A stretch of 64,000 nucleotides of DNA from Styela clava (Eukaryota). The stretch covers positions 8,866,001 to 8,930,000 of the forward strand of contig NC_135258.1 of assembly GCF_964204865.1 (NCBI RefSeq), in the 5' to 3' direction. The translations under genes and the position numbers were made by a program. Below, piece after piece: positions 3,001-33,887 of this stretch. The first letter of the stretch is position 1; each line of letters begins with the position of its first letter. The notes beneath the pieces are model-generated. The model saw nothing but the letters and a program-made list of their open reading frames with translations, was not told the DNA's origin and searched no databases.

Positions 3001-6000
3001 ATGAAGGGTGACCAGGTTATGGCGACTTTACTTCCGCGATTAGACAGCTCAGTGTCAAGTGATGCAAATGTTTCTGGTGATCATTATTAGATTGTTTAAA
3101 TAACTAATCCTAACTAATACCCCCAAGAAGTTAAGTGTAAAAGTGTGGTTTGTGCCAAGATTTCTTCGGTCTATTTGCGGCAAATGAGGGCATGCTATTG
3201 CAAAATTTAACTAAACATATACTTGAGCCAATCGCTATTTCACGAAAATTCATAAGTCTCAAAGATATAATATAATTGAGCGTGTAACGCACGCCCTATT
3301 CGCTATAAGTAATTGATTGGTTATTAATTTTTTCAAACTTTAGTAAGACTGAAAACACAGTATCATATTCACGTTTTAGTAGATATGAACTTGCGGAATC
3401 GACCTTGAAAGATCAGTTTATTGCTGGATATTAACTGAAAAACCTGCGGCAAAAAGGCAAGATCACAGATTCAATTTATTCAAAAGATGTTCTCAACTGT
3501 TTCACATTATACAACAAGAAAAAATAATACATCAGAACAAACTTTCACCACAACTGTGGGTATGCGAAATGCTTCAACAACACTCAGTTGTAGTATTTGT
3601 TCTTTTTTAGGCTTATGTGGATATCCACAATCTTCTAAAATGCTGGGCATATATATGGTATACATATTAAACCTGTTCAGTATTTGTTAGTTGGGTGATC
3701 TAGTAGAGCAATGTGTTGCATTTATATGACTTTATGCGCGCAAAGGGGGACATTCAATGAAAAAGCAGAGACGAAAACCTTCAACTGGATCTTGATTTGC
3801 TGACTGCACCATCAGAATAGGTTTTTTGTAGAACTTTTCCCAATTTATTTAGTGACTGTGTGTGTGTGTGCTGTACTTATACTACAAGTGGTGTTTAGAA
3901 AAGAGAGATTAAATTTAACAACTGCTATCACAGTTATAAGTAGTTATTGTGAGTGAAGACTATGCATTGTGCCTTGACTGCATATTTAGTAAGATACATC
4001 GGGCGACAGAGTGTTGTTGTAACTCTTCGATTTTTCGATCATATAGAAGTTCCCTTAATGAGTACAGCTGGACTGCTACGCATACGCGTCATCTTTACTT
4101 CAGTGACATCTAGCGGCCAGTTGATTTTGATTTCTAGACCCATTTTGATGTGTAATGTCTGTATCGTACAAGTCCTATTCATTTTTCTCGTGAAAATATC
4201 ATATATAAAAACTTTTAGGAGTCCAAAAAGGAGATGCCACAAAGTATAAATTGGAAAACCTTACCGATTTTATTAGATTATGAACATGGATTGAAACAAC
4301 TTCATTCGAGTTCTTCCGTTCAACCCACTATATCATTTCAGAATCTTGTAAAACGGGCCGCATCTTTATTTAAGATACCCTAGTAGTTTCAGACAGGTAA
4401 AAAAAAATGTTTCCATTTTTATTGATTTTACGGTGTGTTAGGGGTACTTGCAGACATGGTGATTTAAAACGCATAGATTTCTAAAGAAAAATGCTATTCA
4501 AATTTATTGTCACACCAACTTTAAACAAATTCAGTGAGAAACATGTTTTTATAACATTGTAAACTTGGCAACAGGATTTTGCTAGCTAGTTTCGCTTATA
4601 TGACAGTGGCACTCAGATTCCACAGTTTGCACACGCCTGGTCTAACGTATAAAAAAACAATAACGAGTTCGCTGACTATCACGGCATTCCAAGAACACCC
4701 AACACTAGATTTAAACGACCAATCGAAAACATGCTAACATAATTTTGTTAATTTACCAATTAAGCATTTTGAAAAAGAGGTAAAAAAAAATTGAAGACAT
4801 CTCTGAAATGCTAGTAAACAATACTTAACATTGAAATTACACGGGAATGGAAATGAGCTAAGTTTTACTCAACTAGGCCTTTTTTTCCCTGAACGTGTCT
4901 GTATATTCCTAACTAAAACCGTTGATGACAAGTAAATCAGTGAAAGTATGTACACTGTCATTGGTAAATAAAAATGCATAATCAAAACATATTTTTTCTT
5001 AATCTTGAATTTTTGAAGTCTTTCTGACAACGCAATTCGATACTCATTTAAAAATGTTAATTCACGTGAAGATGGGAACCGGTCCTTACGTTTTAAATGC
5101 GTGCAAATTGTTAGTTAAGAATGCTGCAAACTGCAACATACCAATGACATACATACTACTTTATGACGCGAGGAACTTACGGCTGGATTAGTTACGTGAT
5201 GAAAATAAAGCGGAATATTTACATACTGGTGATTGCTTTGCTGTTTTCGTTTTGTCGACTGAAACTTGAATGCCCTTACGCATTTGCGGTAAGGAGAAAA
5301 GGTCTGGAGTATAGAGTACGATATATATTCGCTTTAGCTGAGATGAGCTCTCCATTTTAGGTAATATTGCTTTCGCAATTCCCTTTTTGAGTTATTTTGT
5401 TTTATATTTCGTCCAACTATTTGTACAACTCAGTGAAATACATTATACAACCTTTATATAAAGGTGACATAAAGGGTATCATATTACAACATTTGTACCA
5501 ATAATAGAAACAAGCATCTACGTATCAGTTAATTTCACTTTGGTATTTTAGCTCTATGAAAGCCAAAAGAGTAAATTGATCAAACTATTTGATTTTTGCC
5601 GCCCACGAGAACGTTTCGGGATCACGACTCACGAGCTGGGCGATTCATTATCGTGATATGGTCCGGTAAACATTTAGTGGATTTTAAAACACTTTGTATC
5701 CAAGCTTTTGTTTGATTAAGTACGATGTTTCCATCCTCTACAAATCACCCGGGTGTGACGGCAATAATACCCATGAATTCAATGCGAACCTGCTTGCAGT
5801 CACGTAGAAAAATCGGAGACAAATAGTATATACCCCTTTTATTTGTTACAGAGTCATAAACATGAGTACCGTTCGTTTGGTCAGTGGTGCTTGTTGACAA
5901 TGTGCGCGTAACAAAAGTAAACAATTTTTCTCAGTAAACATGATTGCACTCGAATGTATATGTAATGTGCGGGCAGGTTATGTATGAGTATTGGATTCAG

Positions 6001-6647: not shown

Positions 6648-9600
6648 ATGGGAAAAATTGTTTCATTTGGATTTGTATTTTCTGACAACAAGACAGTATA
6701 CTTTCCAGGCGATTTTGTAAGTGGACATCTTGTCGTGGATATTCTCCGACCGATGAAAATTAAGGGTGAGAATATTTAATGGTATTTGTAGGGCATTTAC
6801 GTTTGATTTGTCAAAATCAGAAAAGAAATATTTTCATGTACGGAAATTTTTAATGAGTAGGCCTAGTTTGTCTAACACATGTTACTATTTTTTGTTTTCT
6901 TATTTATAAGTTTTTGTTTCACCCCGAAAAAGAAACTTCTGAATGAGCTAATATTGGCTTATGGCTTATGGCCCTGTGCATTAGATCATAGGTTCTCAAA
7001 GTGCTCCGTACGGAGCCCCAGGGCTCCGCGAGAGAAACCCAGGGGCTCCGCGAGCTATTCGATTACTTTTCAAAATACTGACTAATTTTGTAACTGTTCA
7101 AAGAAGCAATAACAGCTTTGATAAAATCTGACAACAATATAGCCTCGAAATATGGCACAGAGGCGGAATTTAAAAATGACATTATTTATAAGCAGGAGCG
7201 CAGCCAGGATTCTTAAGAGGGAGGTGGTTCAAAATTAGAATCGAAAAACGGATAACGGGATTTCTGTTGCGTAAAATATTCAATCCATGACCGATGCCAG
7301 CATTTAAAGTGTCTCGTCGTTATAATGTAATTGTGTTCATCTTTACTCACCTTTGATTCGAAATTACTATTAGGATTACTAAAATGAAAGAATACTATTC
7401 TAAAATAACATAAAATATGTGATAAACTGCCAACTATAAATAAATTGGAGTCGTATTTTTGCGATCTTGGGGTTTGTCAAACTTGATTTGTTCTTTCGCA
7501 CTTGAGAATATATTTAAGCAAGATATCGCCGTTTAAAAAATCACAATGTCTGGGCAAAATACGAACAATTGAAATCTATTTTATTGCATTCGGCTCCATC
7601 GGTAGTTTTAGAATGAAAATGGTACATCGCGGATCGCGCGCACAATTGATTGCGAGCGGTTCCGTCGGCAGTTTCAAAATGGGGAAAAAAAATACATCGC
7701 ACGCACAATTGACTGTGTTTCGATTTTGCAGTTACTACGATGAAAATCTAACATAACAGCAAATTTTGTGATTTACAATGTCTATAAAAGCGTTTTCAAT
7801 CTACGGTGAGTCTGCTGAAACCAAACGTGTGATCTTCCATTTTAAGTTTTAGTTTTAATATTTTAGAATGCCGCTTTTCAATCAAGAAATTTGAGTTGCG
7901 GATCTACCTCTTCATTAATTATTATTTTTAGCAGTTCGTCGCCGATGACTATAAAATGGTAACATATTTTTCACATTGAACTCATAATTCCCCACGAGAA
8001 CAAAAAAGCAATTAACGTCGTCATTGTGTAACAATACATGTATATGCCGAGGGAATTTTTGATATAGGGAGAATAAACAACGGCGTAAAGATGTAGGTTC
8101 AAAAACACGCCGCCATGCTGAGGAAAAAAATCGGCGATTGTAACAAAATGCAATCTCGCACATTATTAGCGGCATTTTGGGTCTTCCAAAAATGTCAAAA
8201 GGGAGAAGATTCGACCCCTAATTTATTAGTATGTTTGTCAAGTGTCAAATTTACAGCTTTAGTATATATAATTTATGTTTGAAATTTAGATTTATTTATA
8301 ACTTGTATTAACCCTATCAAAAAAGGTTCAGCATTTAAATTGAGTAAAGTACTTTTAACTTGCTCAGGAATATTAATCAGAAAGTAACAATTTTAACATT
8401 TATTTTGGGGCTCCGTGAGTAATAGTCAACAATTTCAAGGGCTCCGCGACACCAAAAGTTTGAGAACCCCTGCATTAGATAATACTATTTGTACAAATCT
8501 AAATTTTTTGGCAATGCCCAAGTAGCTTATGATACCCCGAATAAGATAGATAGGGCTGTGGTAGGATATAACCCTTGGAATCTGAAACGACACGTAGCCA
8601 TTCTCGTCAAGCAATACTGGCATTTGTGCATGTTTAGAATAATAAAGTCGCATATCAGTTTCTTCGTTAATAAATTATCTCTTCATGTATTTTTGTCTAG
8701 AAATCAAAATAAGATTTTTCGGCAAAGCTCTTGTTCGTTGGAAAACTACAGAGATGGTGAATGTTTCCAATCTGCACGAAAGCATACATGCCAGCCAAAC
8801 AAATAGGCAATCTGTTACTAGAAATTACTCCGCTACACAAAACCTTTTTAACCAACATATGTTGTTGTATGGAAGAGGTGGGTATTATAAAACGCCTTTT
8901 TAAGTTTGTTTAGTAGTTTGATTTTGGTTTGATCAATCTGGATATGAAATGTTTGTCAAATTTTAAACCCTACAATTCAACCAATTAATAAAGCAATATT
9001 ATTAAGAAACGAAAAATAAATCGGAGATTGGGTAGGTCGAGACTATGATTTTTTTTGTGTGTTATTTCATCATTGAGTAATTATGTTGTTGCAGAAGTGA
9101 ATGGCGAACATAGCTTACCACAGGGACAGACTATTTTACCATTTGAATGCCAACTGCCACATCCTCTACCGTCATCGTTTGAAGGTAAATCTTCACTGAT
9201 TTGCATGAAAATAGACTCGACTTGAAAATCAGTTAGATTACGCAAAGATTAACTACATACCATTCCTCTATGCATTTTTTGATTCCGCATGCGTAAAATT
9301 CAGGAACACTGTAACAAGAATAAATTTGGCTAATTCATGTGATTCTGATAGAATACTTTCAATACAGTCATTTACTAATTATGTTTGATGAATTTATATT
9401 TCTTATAATATTTATATTATATATATTATTTATTATAAATACTTGATTGGCAATTGAATGTTATCGCCAGCATTATTTTATCCTTATGCCTAGAATATTC
9501 AATTTTATATAGATAATATTTAACACGCAAAATTTGTTTCAAATTTAAAAATACATTCCTATAGATAAACCTATTATGGTGAAACCAAAGTAACTAAATA

Positions 9601-13830: not shown

Positions 13831-14044
13831 GGTACTCCTGAAGTATGTGAACCGAGATGGTGGACAGGTTAGGGTCAGGCAATGGTTTTAATCTAATTTT
13901 CCGTATTTTAGTTCTATTACTAGTTTAGGGACTAGCCAAGTGACTCTCGTAGTAATTGTACCTGAGATTATTGCTTAACGATAACCTGGTACACATACTA
14001 CGTTCCGGTGTCCGCCATCTTGAATCGCATATTTCGGGAGTACC
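13831..14044. mobile_element. MITE with GG-initiated TIRs, same family as 20802-21037 in opposite orientation
   Basis: TIRs GGTACTCCTGAAGTATGTGAACCGAGATGG / CCATCTTGAATCGCATATTTCGGGAGTACC. The element is absent from the paralogous sequence near 16940. No clean TSD. Confidence 0.8.
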
Positions 14045-14167: not shown

Positions 14168-14309
14168 AGCTTTGCGCAGCGGCAGTATCGTAACCAATGA
14201 GGTTTATCCGAGGTGCGATTATTGCTAGTTGAAAACTATTACCAATACCCCGCCGTGGTGGCGCAAACGCGTCGCTTGTGGCAATTTCTGAAGGGTTGTA
14301 GGCAACCTG
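14168..14309 (+). ncRNA. U4: U4 spliceosomal snRNA, apparently intact
   Basis: AGCTTTGCGCAGCGGCAGTATCGTAACCAATGAGGTTTATCCGAGGTGCGATTATTGCTAGTTGAAAAC...CCAATACCCCGCCGTG closely matches the vertebrate U4 5' region. Sm site AATTTCTG at 14283, terminal hairpin GGGTTG-TAGG-CAACCT, length about 142 nt. Confidence 0.95.
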
Positions 14310-14642
14310 TACTGTTTGCAATTGTGGTTTTATTATTCGATCATTACCGTTGTTATCGCTACGCGAGTTGAGTTATGTCATACCCCTCCCCGTTATTAGC
14401 TGTTTATAAGCTCAACGCGAATCGACAACAACTTCATGACCTTCCAAAAATTGGTTTTCGTGGGGTACTAAAATCAGTTCCTGTTGTAATCGTCAGTTTT
14501 ATGGTTGATATTGGGTAATTTATTAAAATAATTCAATTGCGGGAATTTTAATTCACATTATTGTGGCAATTATGAGTGTTATTTGAGTCACCATAAATAC
14601 TAGGGTTTATTCATACTTTCATAAGAACATTTTTCTCTCTTC

Positions 14643-14751
14643 CGTAACCAATGAGGTTTATCCGAGGTGCGATTATTGCTAGTTGAAAACTATTACCCTG
14701 GTGATACAAACGCGTCGCCTGTGGCAATTTCTGAAGGTTTCTGCGAAACCT
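14643..14751 (+). pseudogene. U4: U4 snRNA pseudogene, about 21 nt missing at the 5' end plus an internal deletion
   Basis: CGTAACCAATGAGGTTTATCCGAGGTGCGATTATTGCTAGTTGAAAACTATTACC is identical to the intact copy. Sm site and terminal hairpin are retained, and a PSE-like block lies upstream. Confidence 0.85.
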
Positions 14752-15052: not shown

Positions 15053-15880
15053 TAAAAAATACAGACATTGACTATGCAATAGCCATGAGTGTGAACATAT
15101 CTTGACTATACCTCCAATATTTTGGGAACTTGAGAGCGAGCGCAACATTGGTAAGATATCTAATAAAATCAGTAAAAGCTATTACTAGATTGTTAACGGC
15201 TAAACTTCATAACATCTCTGTACGTGTTCACACAACTGGCGTGAGGAATTTGAAGTAATTGAATGTATGTTCCTGGTTCAGCATTGCTCGAATGAAATAA
15301 ATATAACCACTAAGCATATAGTAAATAAGATAACTTTAGATAAATTTTTATCACGCGACTAACTGTTCATCTCGACCTTGCTCCAACACGAATTGAAATA
15401 TTGATTCATCGTTACAGTAAAAAAACGCAAAGACAATTTAACTCAAAACAAAAAATGTTATATTAACATGTGTGAGGTAATGTCTGATTAAATCCTATTT
15501 ATGAATATTTAGGCGTGGAGAGTTTTAATGACACGACACGATAGTTCAGGTTTACTCGTTTCTTACTTTACCAACGATTACTGGTGGACTTGAGGAGGAA
15601 GGAAGGAAGTGAGAAGGAACACGAACGTATGGATAAATGGAATATTTGATAAATCGTTTCTGTGTTGAAATATTCACCAACGCTAATAACCTACTGATAA
15701 ATCACCAAAAGGACTTCTCGCATGTAGAATATTTTTATTTAAAAATTCTACTTGCCCGACAACAATTGTACATTTATCAATTATGGGAAAGCTTATTGCA
15801 AATTCTATTATTAGAAAGGTTAAAACATTTTTTGGCAAATTTTTCTCAATACTATTGCTAACCAAGCTATTTGTCTAGTT

Positions 15881-17061: not shown

Positions 17062-17074
17062 AGCTTTGCGCAGT
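17062..17074 (+). pseudogene. U4: U4 snRNA relic: promoter plus first 13 nt only
   Basis: AGCTTTGCGCAGT lies 59 nt downstream of a PSE-like TCACC, then similarity ends. Confidence 0.7.
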
Positions 17075-17232
17075 TGAAGTTTTATGAATGATATTGGATA
17101 ACTTTTTAAAAAAGGGAGAACACATGAATTTTAGTTTATATAAATATGTGGCAATTATGTGCGTATTCTCGAGTCACCACAAATGGTAGAATTCATTTTA
17201 AGTACTATAGGAACTTTTCCTCCTGAATCGGT

Positions 17233-17307
17233 AGCTTTGCGCAGTGGCAGTATCGTAACCAATGAGGTTTAATGAGGAAAAAAAAAAAAAAAAACCAATG
17301 AGGTTTA
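17233..17307 (+). pseudogene. U4: U4 snRNA gene interrupted after nt 39 by retrotransposon insertion(s)
   Basis: U4 nt 1-39 (17233-17271), then ATGAGG + A17, then a repeat of (AA)CCAATGAGGTTTA, then the LINE 5' UTR. Confidence 0.9.
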
Positions 17308-17428
17308 TTGGTGTAATTGGCTGTATCGAGCTAGTTGTTTGATTAAGATGAACATTTGCTATTGTTATTATCTATTGGAACACTTTGGATTGTAAACTAT
17401 ATGGAATATACATTCGTGGATACTAAAA

Positions 17429-18848
17429 ATGGATTACTCCGCAGCTCTTACAGGATCAATGGGGATTACAGGTAATCGCCCTCGATCGGTTGTCACAGAG
17501 GTGAGTGATTCGGTTCCATTACATTTGAACCCACGTACATTTGAACCCATGACAATTGCACCTGTATGCTATTGCACCTATGGATTTTTTTTTGGTTCAC
17601 GGATAGTTAAACCCATACTAACCCTAACCCATGGGTTTTAGCACCCGCATATAGATTGAACCCGTGGATATACGCATGTGTTCAAATGTACGTGGGTTCA
17701 AATGTACGGTCACCGAGTGATTCTATTGATATAAACCGATTTCTCTACATCTTGGGAGAAAACCTTGTAACAAAAAGATATGTCGAACAACTGTCAGGAA
17801 TTTTTGAAACTAGGCCGAAAATTTGGTTGATATCTTTCAAACAGTTGAATCCAACAAATCCAAGTGATTCAGTTAGAGACAAATTTATTGTAGAAACGCA
17901 AAATGGCATTAACGTAGATGATACAATAGTACGCTTTTTTCTACCCACAAAACCTTCAACAAGAATCAGCATTCGCGATGTGCCAGACGAATCACGACCA
18001 CAAGTCGTCCTTGAAGCTCTGAACAAGGCTGAATGCGGAAAAATTAAAAGCATGACCAAACTATACTACCGAAACACTCAACTATTCAACGGATATATAG
18101 CTGTATGGATAGATGGTTTTAAACAGAAAAAATTGCCCCCCTTTCTTGTCATTGACAAAGCTAGGTGCAAAGCCTACGTATCCACCGAGCTGTACAATCC
18201 AACGTGCATGAACTGTCTTAATCCTGGTCATAATGCAAGAAATTGCCGAAATAAAACAAAAATGTAGATCATGCAAAAGTGCCACGTTCAGGCAAATTGC
18301 CCCCTAAAATCCAAGGTAAGACCGAATAATATGGAATCGTGGCTTAAGGAATCAATATCTACAAAACCTGGGATAGTATCATATGTAGAAGAAAAAAAGA
18401 CGCAGCACCAAACAATAACACCATACCAGAAATAGGAGATAATCAAATTGCAGAGGCAGTGCTCCCAACTTCTCACTTCGACACAATACCTGATACGGAT
18501 TTGTTATACGAAGAAGTAAAAGATTGGTTTCTATCAAAAGACAATAGGATAACAACACCCCAAAAGCGCACGTCACCTCGCAAAACAGTACCGAAACATA
18601 AATTAAAACCTACATCTACAATAGGGAACACTCCAATTGGACCCCCAGTAATTGGCAAATCGTATATAAACATGGTAATTAACGACCTAGAGAATCCAAA
18701 TAGCACGTATGAAACTGACCCATCACAAACACTCACACTTGAGCCTACTATTAGCAAAACCGAAAAACAGATTGGAAAACGGGAAAGAGAAAATACCTCT
18801 TCGTCGACAACATCGATAATATCACCCTCACCAAGACCCAACATATGA
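17429..18848 (+). pseudogene. LINE ORF1 (gag-like CCHC zinc-knuckle protein), disrupted
   Basis: ORF fragments 17429-17641, 17656-18267 and 18459-18848. The first two join in frame once the 17512-17714 MITE and one TSD copy are removed. Confidence 0.8.
17512..17714. mobile_element. MITE inserted in LINE ORF1
   Basis: About 35-bp TIRs GGTTCCATTACATTTGAACCCACGTACATTTGAAC / GTTCAAATGTACGTGGGTTCAAATGTACGGTCACC, 9-bp TSD GAGTGATTC, internal CTAACCCTAACCC. Confidence 0.88.
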
Positions 18849-20801
18849 CTGAAACTCCATCACAATTAAAAATAATCTCACTGAACGTAAACGGACTAGA
18901 AAAAAATTGGAAAAAACTAAAAATCTTCATAACTTACCACAACCCAGACATTATTGCTTTACAAGAAGTCCACAGAGTTAAAAGCAACGTTTTCGAGAAA
19001 CGACTTAAAACATGGGGTACAGATTATTTATTAACTCACTGACCGACTTCGATAAAAGGGATGACCAAAGATTCTTCCAAGGCACCGCCACTGCAGTAAG
19101 AGAAAACCTATGTGCAACGCACAGCCTTGAATATGTAATATTCATACCTTGTAAAGCGTGATCGACATCAATGACGAACTTACAAACCAAAGACAAGCTA
19201 TCTCTAGTAAATGTTTATGCACCTCCCAGAAGAGGCGACAGAAAAACTAGAATGTTCTGCAAAAAGCTGATAAACTTTGTGAGAGAGATCAAGCATATTC
19301 CAATTTAACATGGTTCACCAAAAATAGACGTCAGCAACGAAAACTCATTTACACTAGGGAACCCAGAAAGAAAATGGAAAGACTTTATACAAGCTTACAA
19401 CTACATAGACACCTATAGATATCACTGGCCCGATAAAAGATTATATACAATTACCAGGAGGAGACAATCCCGACGAATAGATCGAATATATATTCCGTAC
19501 AACATTAGTCATGAATTAAAAAATACAGAATATTTAGTAAACACCGTTTCAGACCACCACTTGGCATCGCATATCACTTTCAAAAATATTAAGCAAGTTA
19601 AATGGGGATGGGGAACCTAGAAAAACAATACTGCTCATTTTAAGAATGAAAAAGTCAGATTTTTGATAAAAGAGATATACAAAAAAGAAAAACAGTTCAA
19701 CATCAAACCAAGAAATATATTTACTCAATAAAAACCTGCAGCAAGTAGAAAAAAAAAGTGACGTTCAAACAAAAAACAGCAAAAATCAAAGCATTAGAAC
19801 AAAACGAAAGACCAACTAAATATTTCTTTGACAAATTGAAAACTAGAAGACGGAAAACTACTATAGACAGCCTCCAAAACAAAGAAGGAAAGTATTTGAA
19901 AACAAAAAATGAAATACTGGATGAAGCGCAAAAATTTTACCAAACATTATGGAAACAAACGTAAGTAGGGGAGGAAAAAAGAATGGGGGAGTATCTCAAA
20001 ATATATGGAGAAACCATGCTTAGCACTGAGGAAAAAGAAGGAAGAACTATTCAGAACACTGAAACAAATGGACAATTTCAAAACTCCGGGACCAGATGGG
20101 TTATCAAAGGAATTTTACCTTGAATTCTGGGAAATTCTAAAGAATGACCTGCACCAGCTAGTAAACAATGCTATCGCTTTCGACACATTACCCAAAAGTA
20201 GCAAAGAATCGATAGTCACCCTTATCTTTAAAAAAGGAAACTCAAATCACCTAGCAAATTACCGGCCCATATCAAACTTAAATGTAGATTTTAAACTGAT
20301 ATCAAAAATAATAGCTAACCGATTGAAACTTATCTTGGATAAATATATAATGCCAACACAAAAAAGCGCGATTCCCAACCGATCCATATTTGATAGCTTA
20401 CGAAATATTCAAGAAATATGGAATTATACAACAAAATGGAACCTACCTTTATATATAATCAGTTTCGATCAGGAAAAAGCTTTTAATATGGTTAACCAAC
20501 GTTTTTTATTCAAAACCATGACTAAACTAAACTTCAACAAAAATATTATTAAGTTAATCAAAGAAATGTACAATTGTATATACAGCAGAATACAAATTAA
20601 CGGAGCTAAAACCAATAAAATCTTTTTGACCAGGGGAATTAGACAAGGCTGTCCTGCCCATTGAGCATGGCAATGTACACCTTAGCCATGACCCATTGGC
20701 AAGAAAAATCATCGCGAACCAAAAGATAAAAGGATTCAGTATCGGGAAATACAAAACCGTAATTGATCAATTTAGAGACGACAATACAACATACGCGCGA
20801 G
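18845..20801 (+). pseudogene. LINE ORF2 (AP endonuclease + reverse transcriptase), disrupted and truncated
   Basis: ORF fragments 18845-19042, 19758-19964 and 20005-20664 carry EN and RT motifs. Homology ends just after the catalytic-site motif. Confidence 0.9.
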
Positions 20802-21037
20802 GGGGCTTCCGAAGTATGCGAACCAAGATGGCGGACATCGTAATGTAACATGTGTACTAGGTTAGGTTTAGGCCATAATTTTAGGTATGAATACTACGGG
20901 AGGCTCTTGGCTAGTCTTCGAACTGATAATAGGACTAAAATAAGGAAAATTGGAAAAAAATTATCGCCTAACCCTAACCTGTTACCCATGTTACGTTCCG
21001 ATGTCCGCCATCTTGGTTCGCATACTTCGGGAGCACC
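20802..21037. mobile_element. MITE with GG-initiated TIRs and 8-bp TSD (Merlin-like signature)
   Basis: TIRs of 40 bp or more, GGGGCTTCCGAAGTATGCGAACCAAGATGGCGGACATCG / CGATGTCCGCCATCTTGGTTCGCATACTTCGGGAGCACC. TSD CGCGCGAG (20794-20801 and 21038-21045). Confidence 0.88.
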
Positions 21038-21472
21038 CGCGCGAGACATTTGGAATATTTGATAAATCGTTTGCGTGTTGGAATATTTACTATGACTAAT
21101 AACCTACTGACAAATCACCAAAAAGATTTCTCGCTTATAGAATATTTTATTCAAAAATTCGACTTGCCCGACAATTTCTTCTCACAATTGTACATTTGCA
21201 ACAAAATCAAAATTACAACTCAATGTTACTTTCGCAAAGTTTCGAAGTCACGATGAAGCGAATTTATGCCACGGCATACGATTTATTTCGTTGTTTATTC
21301 ATTTTTTGTTCCAAGCTTAACCGGTGCAAAAATTCCCGTATGAATACAATTATATATCAGAATTGGGATCAACAAAAATACTTTGTTGACATAAATCAAT
21401 GTTTGTCTCTTTTCATATACATAAGCAGAGCTTTTAGTGATGGTAGCAAAATAGGAGAATGGTTTAATTTGA

Positions 21473-32540: not shown

Positions 32541-33887
32541 ATGACTGAAGAAGTGACAGAAGAAATGAGTGGCGACGACATGGATGATGGAAATGTCATG
32601 AAGAGTATTATGCATAGGGGAATAGCGGTGGAGTTCATATTATTGGTTTTAAACTTGTATCTTGCGGTGGCATTCGGATTGCACGGAAAAAAAGAAAAGA
32701 TGATGAAATGTCGTTCTAATAGAGATATGCATCGTGGTTTAGTGTATAAAAGTGCTCTTGCAGCCGTGATTTTACCATTCCTACGGTACGCATGTACCTT
32801 GGCGTTCATATTTGAAGGCCTTTTCTCAACTGGATTCAATGGATGTGAATGGTCTGCTGATTTTGCATATGTAGGTTTAATGCTGGGGCTTTTACCAACG
32901 TATACGTTTCTATGGGCCCGGCAGAGAGCATTCTACAGCCATCCTAGCCTTAGTGGAAAATACGGTGTCTGTATCAGTTTAACAAGCAAGTTTGTTTTTG
33001 TGCCCATAATTGTCCAAGGGTTGGTATCTGTAGTACTCGCTACATATACAAGAGAATACGAACTAGATATCAAAAACCATCAATGCGTTCTGTCAGATCA
33101 TGTACCCCATGTTGACTACAGAGAGTTTCTCTATGCCGGGGTGATGGTTTCAAGTCAAGTTGTATTACTGTTGCTCTTCATAAACCCGATCGTATCGCAT
33201 GTAAAATCACAGAATAAGCAATTCACGGTACGAAGAAATGCAAACGATGATACGGATTTCAAATCAACCACCGAGAGTAGCTCTCAGCACGATGTATCCA
33301 CGATAAATGTTGTTAACACTGTCAGCCAACAATCGGTATGCGGCGTGAGTTTGTCAACAAACCTGCCAGGCCACAATACCAACGAATTGGATGGCGAAAG
33401 GGTCAAGGGTCAAGATGAAAATACAACGAAAGAAATTATCATGCAAGTTTCCAACAAAGTACCAATTCAAACATACAAAAATCAAACTATGCTGGGTGTG
33501 GATAATCCAGCTGCAGATATTCCAGACTGCAAACCCAATAAAACATCAACCAAAATAGCTGATACGTTACGACGTCAGAGTACCCTCGCCACCAATTTTA
33601 TAAAACGAGCGACACGTGGCCGTGATACTGTCAGACGTGGAGGAAAAGTTTTCAGGCTTATGAAACGAACACTCTATCTTGCCTTGACATCAGTTTTATC
33701 CGATATCTCGGTTTTATTGATCTCGGTTATTTGGAGCAATGAGATTCCTCAATCTATGCTGTTTGTGCTATACGACATAAGCATGTTTATCAACGTAGTT
33801 ACCGTTACTGCTTCTTTTGAAAATTGGTGCAAGATATTGAGGCTCCCGTGCACCGTGCCTTTCAAGTGTTTGGATACTCAAGCTTGA
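32541..33887 (+). CDS. Intronless orphan 7-transmembrane (GPCR-like) protein, 448 aa
   Basis: Long uninterrupted ORF with seven hydrophobic segments, Cys at the top of TM3 (GCEW) and in ECL2 (HQCVL), WARQRAFY at the DRY-equivalent position, and a roughly 150-aa Ser/Thr-rich loop between TM5 and TM6. Confidence 0.8.
   Translation: MTEEVTEEMSGDDMDDGNVMKSIMHRGIAVEFILLVLNLYLAVAFGLHGKKEKMMKCRSNRDMHRGLVYKSALAAVILPFLRYACTLAFIFEGLFSTGFNGCEWSADFAYVGLMLGLLPTYTFLWARQRAFYSHPSLSGKYGVCISLTSKFVFVPIIVQGLVSVVLATYTREYELDIKNHQCVLSDHVPHVDYREFLYAGVMVSSQVVLLLLFINPIVSHVKSQNKQFTVRRNANDDTDFKSTTESSSQHDVSTINVVNTVSQQSVCGVSLSTNLPGHNTNELDGERVKGQDENTTKEIIMQVSNKVPIQTYKNQTMLGVDNPAADIPDCKPNKTSTKIADTLRRQSTLATNFIKRATRGRDTVRRGGKVFRLMKRTLYLALTSVLSDISVLLISVIWSNEIPQSMLFVLYDISMFINVVTVTASFENWCKILRLPCTVPFKCLDTQA

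Follow-up and report, generated by a model that had tools for sequence, protein, structure and literature searches.

A young family of L1/Tx1-type LINEs with probable sequence specificity for U4 snRNA genes in Styela clava

The stretch of Styela clava DNA analysed here (64,000 nt, positions 8,866,001 to 8,930,000 of contig NC_135258.1; hereafter the window) holds a cluster of U4 small nuclear RNA (snRNA) genes, one of which is occupied by a degraded long interspersed nuclear element (LINE). This copy is very probably an old, inactive member of an L1/Tx1-type family of retrotransposons lacking long terminal repeats (non-LTR elements) which integrates sequence-specifically, and in the sense orientation, into U4 snRNA genes. 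Eight full-length relatives of 5.12-5.16 kb are present in the genome, with a mutual identity of 98.5-99.4% and an identity of 91.5% to the window copy; on sequence grounds, the family is a recently active one, specific to U4 genes.

The evidence comes primarily from the junctions. The 5' joint between U4 nt ~41 and the first bases of the element is identical in all eight young copies, and five of them are located, in the sense orientation, in promoter-bearing U4 genes. Three of the five stand head to tail in one U4 gene at C10:7.40 Mb, where the two internal junctions hold only poly(A) and U4 nt 27-41, and the other two are on C4 within its main U4 array, one at 20.117 and the other at 20.139 Mb. 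The 3' ends that terminate the arrays, at C10:7.415 Mb, C4:20.122 Mb, and C4:20.145 Mb, show poly(A) and directly behind it the remainder of the U4 gene, beginning with nt 27/28. Since the 5' joint lies at nt ~41, U4 nt 27-41 is duplicated; the length of this target-site duplication (TSD) can be given only as 13-17 bp because of the A's at nt 25-26 and of three bases that U4 and the element have in common at the 5' joint. The occupied genes retain the promoter block of the intact ones, and a block resembling the proximal sequence element (PSE) is found upstream of all 12 U4 starts compared, occupied or unoccupied. As the intact U4 genes of the genome (at least 42) amount together to ~6 kb of 377 Mb (380 contigs), repeated insertion at one U4 nucleotide cannot be due to chance. 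One more promoter-bearing U4 gene (L048, G000:C4:20151014-20154041, positions 1437-1512) contains ~30 nt of a LINE tail with A16 between nt 27 and 28 and no TSD. Roughly one tenth of the U4 gene units of the genome are disrupted. The original prediction of a site-specific family had been made from the window locus alone and would have fallen if other copies had unrelated flanks; tabulation of the copies showed instead the same U4 joint in all eight, and chance at a single locus is excluded by the other copies.

Several observations weigh against this reading or limit it. The two C4 copies, 22 kb apart, have similar promoter flanks and may go back to a single insertion that was copied along with its array unit, and the tandem trio on C10 could have grown via unequal crossing-over, as U4 genes are arrayed. 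These points speak for a rival reading, on which the endonuclease has no specificity, and duplication of U4 arrays together with unequal crossing-over spread a single insertion that had hit a U4 gene by chance. However, the promoter flanks of the occupied genes differ between C10:7.40 Mb, C4:20.1 Mb, and the window, the window copy represents a subfamily 8.5% diverged from the young copies and has a different junction filler, and two separate micro-insertions are found at the same bottom-strand position, all of which supports the independence of the insertion events. Moreover, the tandem junctions show the poly(A)/TSD structure of fresh insertions. We consider the multiplication of one chance insertion highly improbable. 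As to the limits of specificity, three of the eight young copies are situated outside U4 genes, and so are all seven older fragments examined (L038 and L040-L045, 72-90% identity). Therefore, either the specificity is leaky or only ectopic copies survive the turnover of the arrays; probably, ectopic copies outlive those in arrays, since arrays turn over. The predicted site specificity holds in so far as all full-length copies share the U4 joint and most of them occupy U4 genes, and has to be restricted in view of the young copies and older fragments elsewhere: it appears to be strong but not absolute.

The three ectopic full-length copies (on C3, on C9, and at C10:16.89 Mb) are informative about the RNA that was mobilised. 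They start with a leader consisting of U4 nt 2/3-41, lack the U4 promoter, and none of them starts at the element's own first base. In two of them (L033 and L036), a TSD unrelated to U4 encloses the leader, the element, and the poly(A); the mobilised RNA therefore had its first base at the U4 start site or at most two bases away. We infer that this RNA was a co-transcript of a U4-resident copy, starting at the U4 start site. Transcription of the element from the U4 promoter, proposed in the original prediction, thereby gains support of a genomic kind from the three leader-bearing copies. Less favourable is the third ectopic copy (L037), whose TSD is unclear. Of the words of the element, 33-46% occur in four sequencing runs whose identity as RNA is a guess. 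Compared by eye, the L033 target and U4 nt 25-41 agree at 11 of 17 positions; in this single case, off-target cutting of a similar site would fit. Behind the poly(A) of this copy (L033 7537-7610), the 17-bp target is present once more after a second poly(A) of ~25 nt, forming a poly(A)-only micro-insertion as at window 17272-17307.

Two other origins of the leader have to be weighed. LINE reverse transcriptases can switch onto snRNAs, as in the mammalian U6-L1 chimeras, and the leader of the ectopic copies could have arisen in this way, from mature U4 instead of a co-transcript. Such template switching, however, would start at the U4 3' end, bring in the 3' part of U4, and produce variable joints, whereas all three chimeras join U4 nt 41 to the first base of the element, just as the U4-resident copies do; this makes the switching very unlikely. 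Alternatively, the U4-like head could be a built-in part of an element with its own promoter (compare SINEU and Tx1-Mar), the link with U4 genes being due to homology-driven recombination. The presence of the head in three copies outside U4 genes would agree with that, and Tx1 and SINEU families with U1/U2-derived heads have been described (PMC4494074). However, the tandem copies carry U4 nt 27-41 only and not nt 1-26, the 3' junctions have poly(A) beside U4 nt 27/28 with a TSD, like target-primed insertions, and snRNA genes have no known internal promoter (PMC4494074), so that a built-in head seems improbable. As for a processing ribozyme at the 5' junction, it was rejected, since no Rfam match was obtained on L033, L036, or L037 (E<=0.01); besides, processing is unlikely because the leader is retained in daughter copies.

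Given sequence-specific integration and co-transcription, we suppose the following mechanism. The APE-type (apurinic/apyrimidinic endonuclease-like) endonuclease would nick the bottom strand opposite U4 nt 26/27, reverse transcription would be primed at this nick, and the cut in the top strand would follow 13-17 bp further downstream, where the U4 5' stem-loop has its loop. The inserted element stands 41 nt behind the U4 start site, and the external U4 promoter would yield a U4(1-41)-element chimera. In tandem and U4-resident copies the leader is not duplicated, presumably because the end of the cDNA pairs with the resident U4 5' half, which would also create the exact 5' junction. The targets re-created by insertion would be hit again, giving rise to head-to-tail arrays and poly(A)-only micro-insertions. 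Pairing of this kind has been proposed for R2 and R1, and for R2 the upstream target sequence has been suggested to aid formation of the 5' junction (cited in PMC4494074).

In intact copies, ORF1 (ORF, open reading frame) encodes a protein of 431 aa with two CCHC knuckles. Its residues 20-180 fold as two RNA recognition motifs (RRMs) in an AlphaFold model, which was built on an alignment of five sequences and is confident at these residues only (predicted local distance difference test, pLDDT, 73-91); Foldseek matched this region to two-RRM proteins with a probability of 1.00, including hnRNP A1 UP1 (E=2.6e-6). ORF2 encodes 1172 aa with an APE endonuclease domain (PF03372, aa 12-243, E=1e-12), a reverse transcriptase (RT) domain (PF00078, aa 527-775, E=3e-30), and a C-terminal Cys-His motif CX2CX8HX4C near aa 1036-1053. 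Both frames are open in two of the eight copies, and ORF2 in four. The best solved relative of ORF2 is human L1 ORF2p (E=6e-71 over aa 1-881), while R2 proteins match it with E=1e-25 or weaker and in the RT region only. The closest database relatives are 37-38% identical (P0001, P0002), and no relative above 39% identity was found in 15 billion public proteins. ORF1 has full-length relatives of 45% identity among the annotated Styela clava proteins, and a match from Phallusia was returned by the protein database search.

Several features place the family in the L1 group, namely, the APE endonuclease N-terminal to the RT in ORF2, the closest characterised RT and endonuclease being those of L1 ORF2p and not of R2, the C-terminal Cys-His motif of ORF2, the poly(A) tail, and TSDs of 10-17 bp. 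The ORF1 protein is of Type I (RRM plus CCHC knuckles) and not a Transposase_22; in non-mammalian animals, such variants of Type I agree with a Tx1 assignment (PMC5203782), as does insertion specific to a target sequence. Tx1-clade membership would follow from the architecture and from similarity to the L1 group and not from an RT tree, and we provisionally file the family as an L1-group element which works like a site-specific LINE of the Tx1 clade with a new target. Keno of the Tx1 clade is, likewise, an APE-type LINE specific to a multicopy RNA polymerase II (Pol II) snRNA gene (PMC4494074, PMC4640811), but its target is U2, whereas the flanks found here are U4 (Rfam RF00015). The Tx1 targets listed in Fig. 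3 of PMC4494074 are U2, U5, 5S, satellites, and transposons; the U5 family, Mutsu (5S rRNA), Kibi/Koshi (microsatellites), and Tx1 itself (a DNA transposon) share the general architecture and lifestyle with the U4 family, and U4 is not among the targets listed. Transposons targeting snRNA genes that were named in 2015 comprise only Keno, Utopia (U2), Dada-U1, and Dada-U6 (PMC4640811). Utopia and Dada (U1, U6, tRNA) are also specialists of snRNA genes, but the former is a LINE with a restriction-like endonuclease and the latter a DNA transposon, and neither targets U4.

As to the leader, its closest analogue is the snRNA (U1/U2)-derived 5' sequence carried by retrotransposed copies of the crocodilian Tx1-Mar LINEs and SINEU, for which transcription from flanking or target promoters has been discussed (PMC4494074). 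Their heads, however, are a fixed part of dispersed families targeting the Mariner transposon, while the leader of the U4 family is the exact 5' half of its current target, with source copies still inside it. As proposed here for the U4 family, R2 of 28S rDNA is co-transcribed with its target gene and shows no evidence of a promoter of its own (cited in PMC4494074). It differs in that its endonuclease is restriction-like, it has only one ORF, and its 28S leader is removed by a self-cleaving ribozyme, in contrast to the APE-type endonuclease, two ORFs, absence of an Rfam ribozyme match, and retained leader of the U4 family. The chimeras of the U6-L1 type are 5'-truncated copies with variable joints, in contrast to the fixed joint in full-length copies of the U4 family. 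No paper in the searchable literature, Repbase being outside its scope, combines U4 snRNA with Tx1 or target-specific non-LTR elements, and U4 has apparently not been reported there as a target of such LINEs. A metagenome collection yielded no poly(A)-U4 junction, which says little, since animal DNA is scarce in it.

A protein search of the genome located further relatives. One of them (L039, G000:C8:7829000-7838999, at C8:7.83 Mb) has an intact ORF2 that is 62% identical to that of the U4 family. Two copies of this sister family stand head to tail in L039, with junctions at 1580-1640 and 7095-7160; the final poly(A) ends ~20 nt ahead of a histone H3 start codon, and H3 3' stem-loops (Rfam RF00032) follow at 7582-7627 and 7686-7731, so that the sister family occupies the 5' untranslated region (UTR) of H3 in the sense orientation. 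Between the two ORF2 proteins the alignment is gapless, with an identity of 75-85% in the RT and of only 32-38% in aa 41-120, within the endonuclease (EN). We suppose that a shift in target specificity with its seat in the EN would leave such a pattern. A further ORF2, 50% identical, is on C16. Many other intact ORF2 are 35-38% identical, and at least ten of these lie on one strand of a single 240-kb region (C8:4.24-4.48 Mb), which suggests another colonised tandem gene array. The LINE tail in the U4 gene of L048 is closer to the 3' end of the histone H3 sister family than to that of the U4 family; it may reflect trans-mobilisation by U4-family proteins or a third subfamily.

Considering both families together, we tentatively propose, with more doubt than confidence, a clade of promoter-less APE-type LINEs which would insert in the sense orientation a few dozen bases behind the starts of Pol II genes that are repeated in tandem, strongly transcribed, and not polyadenylated (U4, the H3 5'UTR), ride their promoters, and switch targets via fast change of one part of the EN (ORF2 aa 41-120).

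The 3'UTR of the U4 family contains, at L033 7489-7503 (32-46 nt ahead of the poly(A)) and in seven of the eight young copies, 15 nt that equal U4 nt 29-42 with one extra base. This stretch corresponds to the segment which the family itself targets, the kink-turn (k-turn) stem-loop of U4, and the flanking bases might pair into a hairpin; an equally good score was reached by 3 of 200 shuffled versions of the UTR, and older tails retain the segment only in part. It could represent target homology, a mimic of the k-turn, a relic of 3' transduction, or chance, and such a near-copy of the U4 5' stem-loop could have a role in ribonucleoprotein localisation or in annealing at the nick. Target homology of the 3'UTR as a general rule was rejected, since the H3 family has none (79 of 200 shuffles score equally well).

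LINEs with sequence specificity act as natural machines that place DNA at defined sites, and little is understood of the way in which endonucleases of the APE type gain new specificities. The present family is young, has open reading frames, and uses a target, U4, that is unreported in the literature searched. Because the ORF2 of the 62%-identical H3 sister aligns with its own gaplessly, the search for determinants of specificity is narrowed to a small part of the EN. The ectopic copies with the leader constitute genomic fossil evidence for an RNA start at the U4 start site. If this is true, a promoter of the snRNA type is able to give rise to a LINE RNA that is polyadenylated and can be translated; this was not to be expected, because snRNA promoters are coupled to their own 3'-end processing. 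The results are of interest to transposon biology and possibly to the engineering of site-specific insertion, and do not amount to a new principle.

Table 1. Features of the U4 gene cluster and of the element copy in the window, with the target-site duplications of the three ectopic copies
Feature	Location	Strand	Remarks
Intact, unoccupied U4 gene	window 14168-14306	+	Rfam RF00015, 120.9 bits
U4 pseudogene without ~nt 1-21, with internal deletion	window 14626-14748	+	Rfam 62.9 bits; BLAST match from U4 nt 22
PSE-like conserved promoter block, -62 to -47 of the occupied U4 gene	window 17171-17186	+	shared by U4 genes
U4 snRNA gene nt 1-39, 5' half of the target	window 17233-17271	+	38/39 identical to intact U4 14168-14306
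Micro-insertion, 6 nt + A17	window 17272-17294	+	read directly; U4 nt 27-39 present on either side
Target-site duplication, second copy of U4 nt 27-39	window 17295-17307	+	
17 bases of unexplained origin at the 5' junction	window 17308-17324	+	not present in the eight young copies; first base possibly U4 nt 40
Element 5'UTR, 104 nt	window 17325-17428	+	~90% identical to reference positions 1-103
ORF1 remnant	window 17429-18832	+	split by MITE, broken by indels; intact copies encode two RRMs and two CCHC knuckles
Miniature inverted-repeat transposable element (MITE), 203 bp, inside the element	window 17512-17714	.	9-bp TSD (17503-17511 / 17715-17723)
ORF2 remnant, APE endonuclease + RT as far as the catalytic aspartates	window 18845-20801	+	many frameshifts and stops
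Terminal inverted repeat (TIR) element, 237 bp	window 20802-21038	.	7-bp TSD; related copy 13864-14044
Final five element bases (reference 3583-3587)	window 21046-21050	+	ahead of deletion junction to U4-cluster spacer
Non-U4 TSD, 14 bp	L033		GATTAATTAGGGTT
Non-U4 TSD, 10 bp	L036		ACTTATTCTT
TSD unclear	L037		

In the window (Table 1), the order of features originally predicted, a promoter-bearing U4 gene followed on the same strand by a LINE with a 5'UTR, a zinc-knuckle ORF1, and an ORF2 with APE and RT domains, was recovered in all its parts. The borders of the element needed correction. It had been supposed to begin right after U4 nt 39-40; the U4 match does end at nt 39, but 17272-17324 (the micro-insertion, the repeat of nt 27-39, and the 17 bases) intervenes, and the first base common to the window copy and the other copies of the family is 17325/17326. 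We read the micro-insertion as the outcome of retrotransposition at the same nick with an extreme truncation of the 5' end. As for the other end, the deletion of the 3' junction is real, but position 20801, where the element had been thought to stop, is only the insertion point of the 237-bp TIR element, and the break itself follows 21050: homology to the U4-cluster spacer (to 15638-15775) begins at 21051, and ~1.58 kb of ORF2 and 3'UTR, the poly(A), and the 3' half of U4 are missing. Compared with intact copies, the window copy has five internal deletions of 14-152 bp and several indels of 1-5 bp, and at least 29 stops in every frame; it is evidently a dead, old member of the family.

The 203-bp MITE within ORF1 is present genome-wide in dozens of copies at 96-99% identity. 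The 237-bp element is MITE-like, with long terminal inverted repeats, and occurs twice within the U4 cluster of the window. Outside the cluster, an ORF of 448 aa on the plus strand (window 32541-33887) has no Pfam match. A 13-nt U4 stub joined to spacer is found at window 17064-17076, and the U4 cluster as a whole is decaying, the gene at 14168-14306 being the only one that looks functional.

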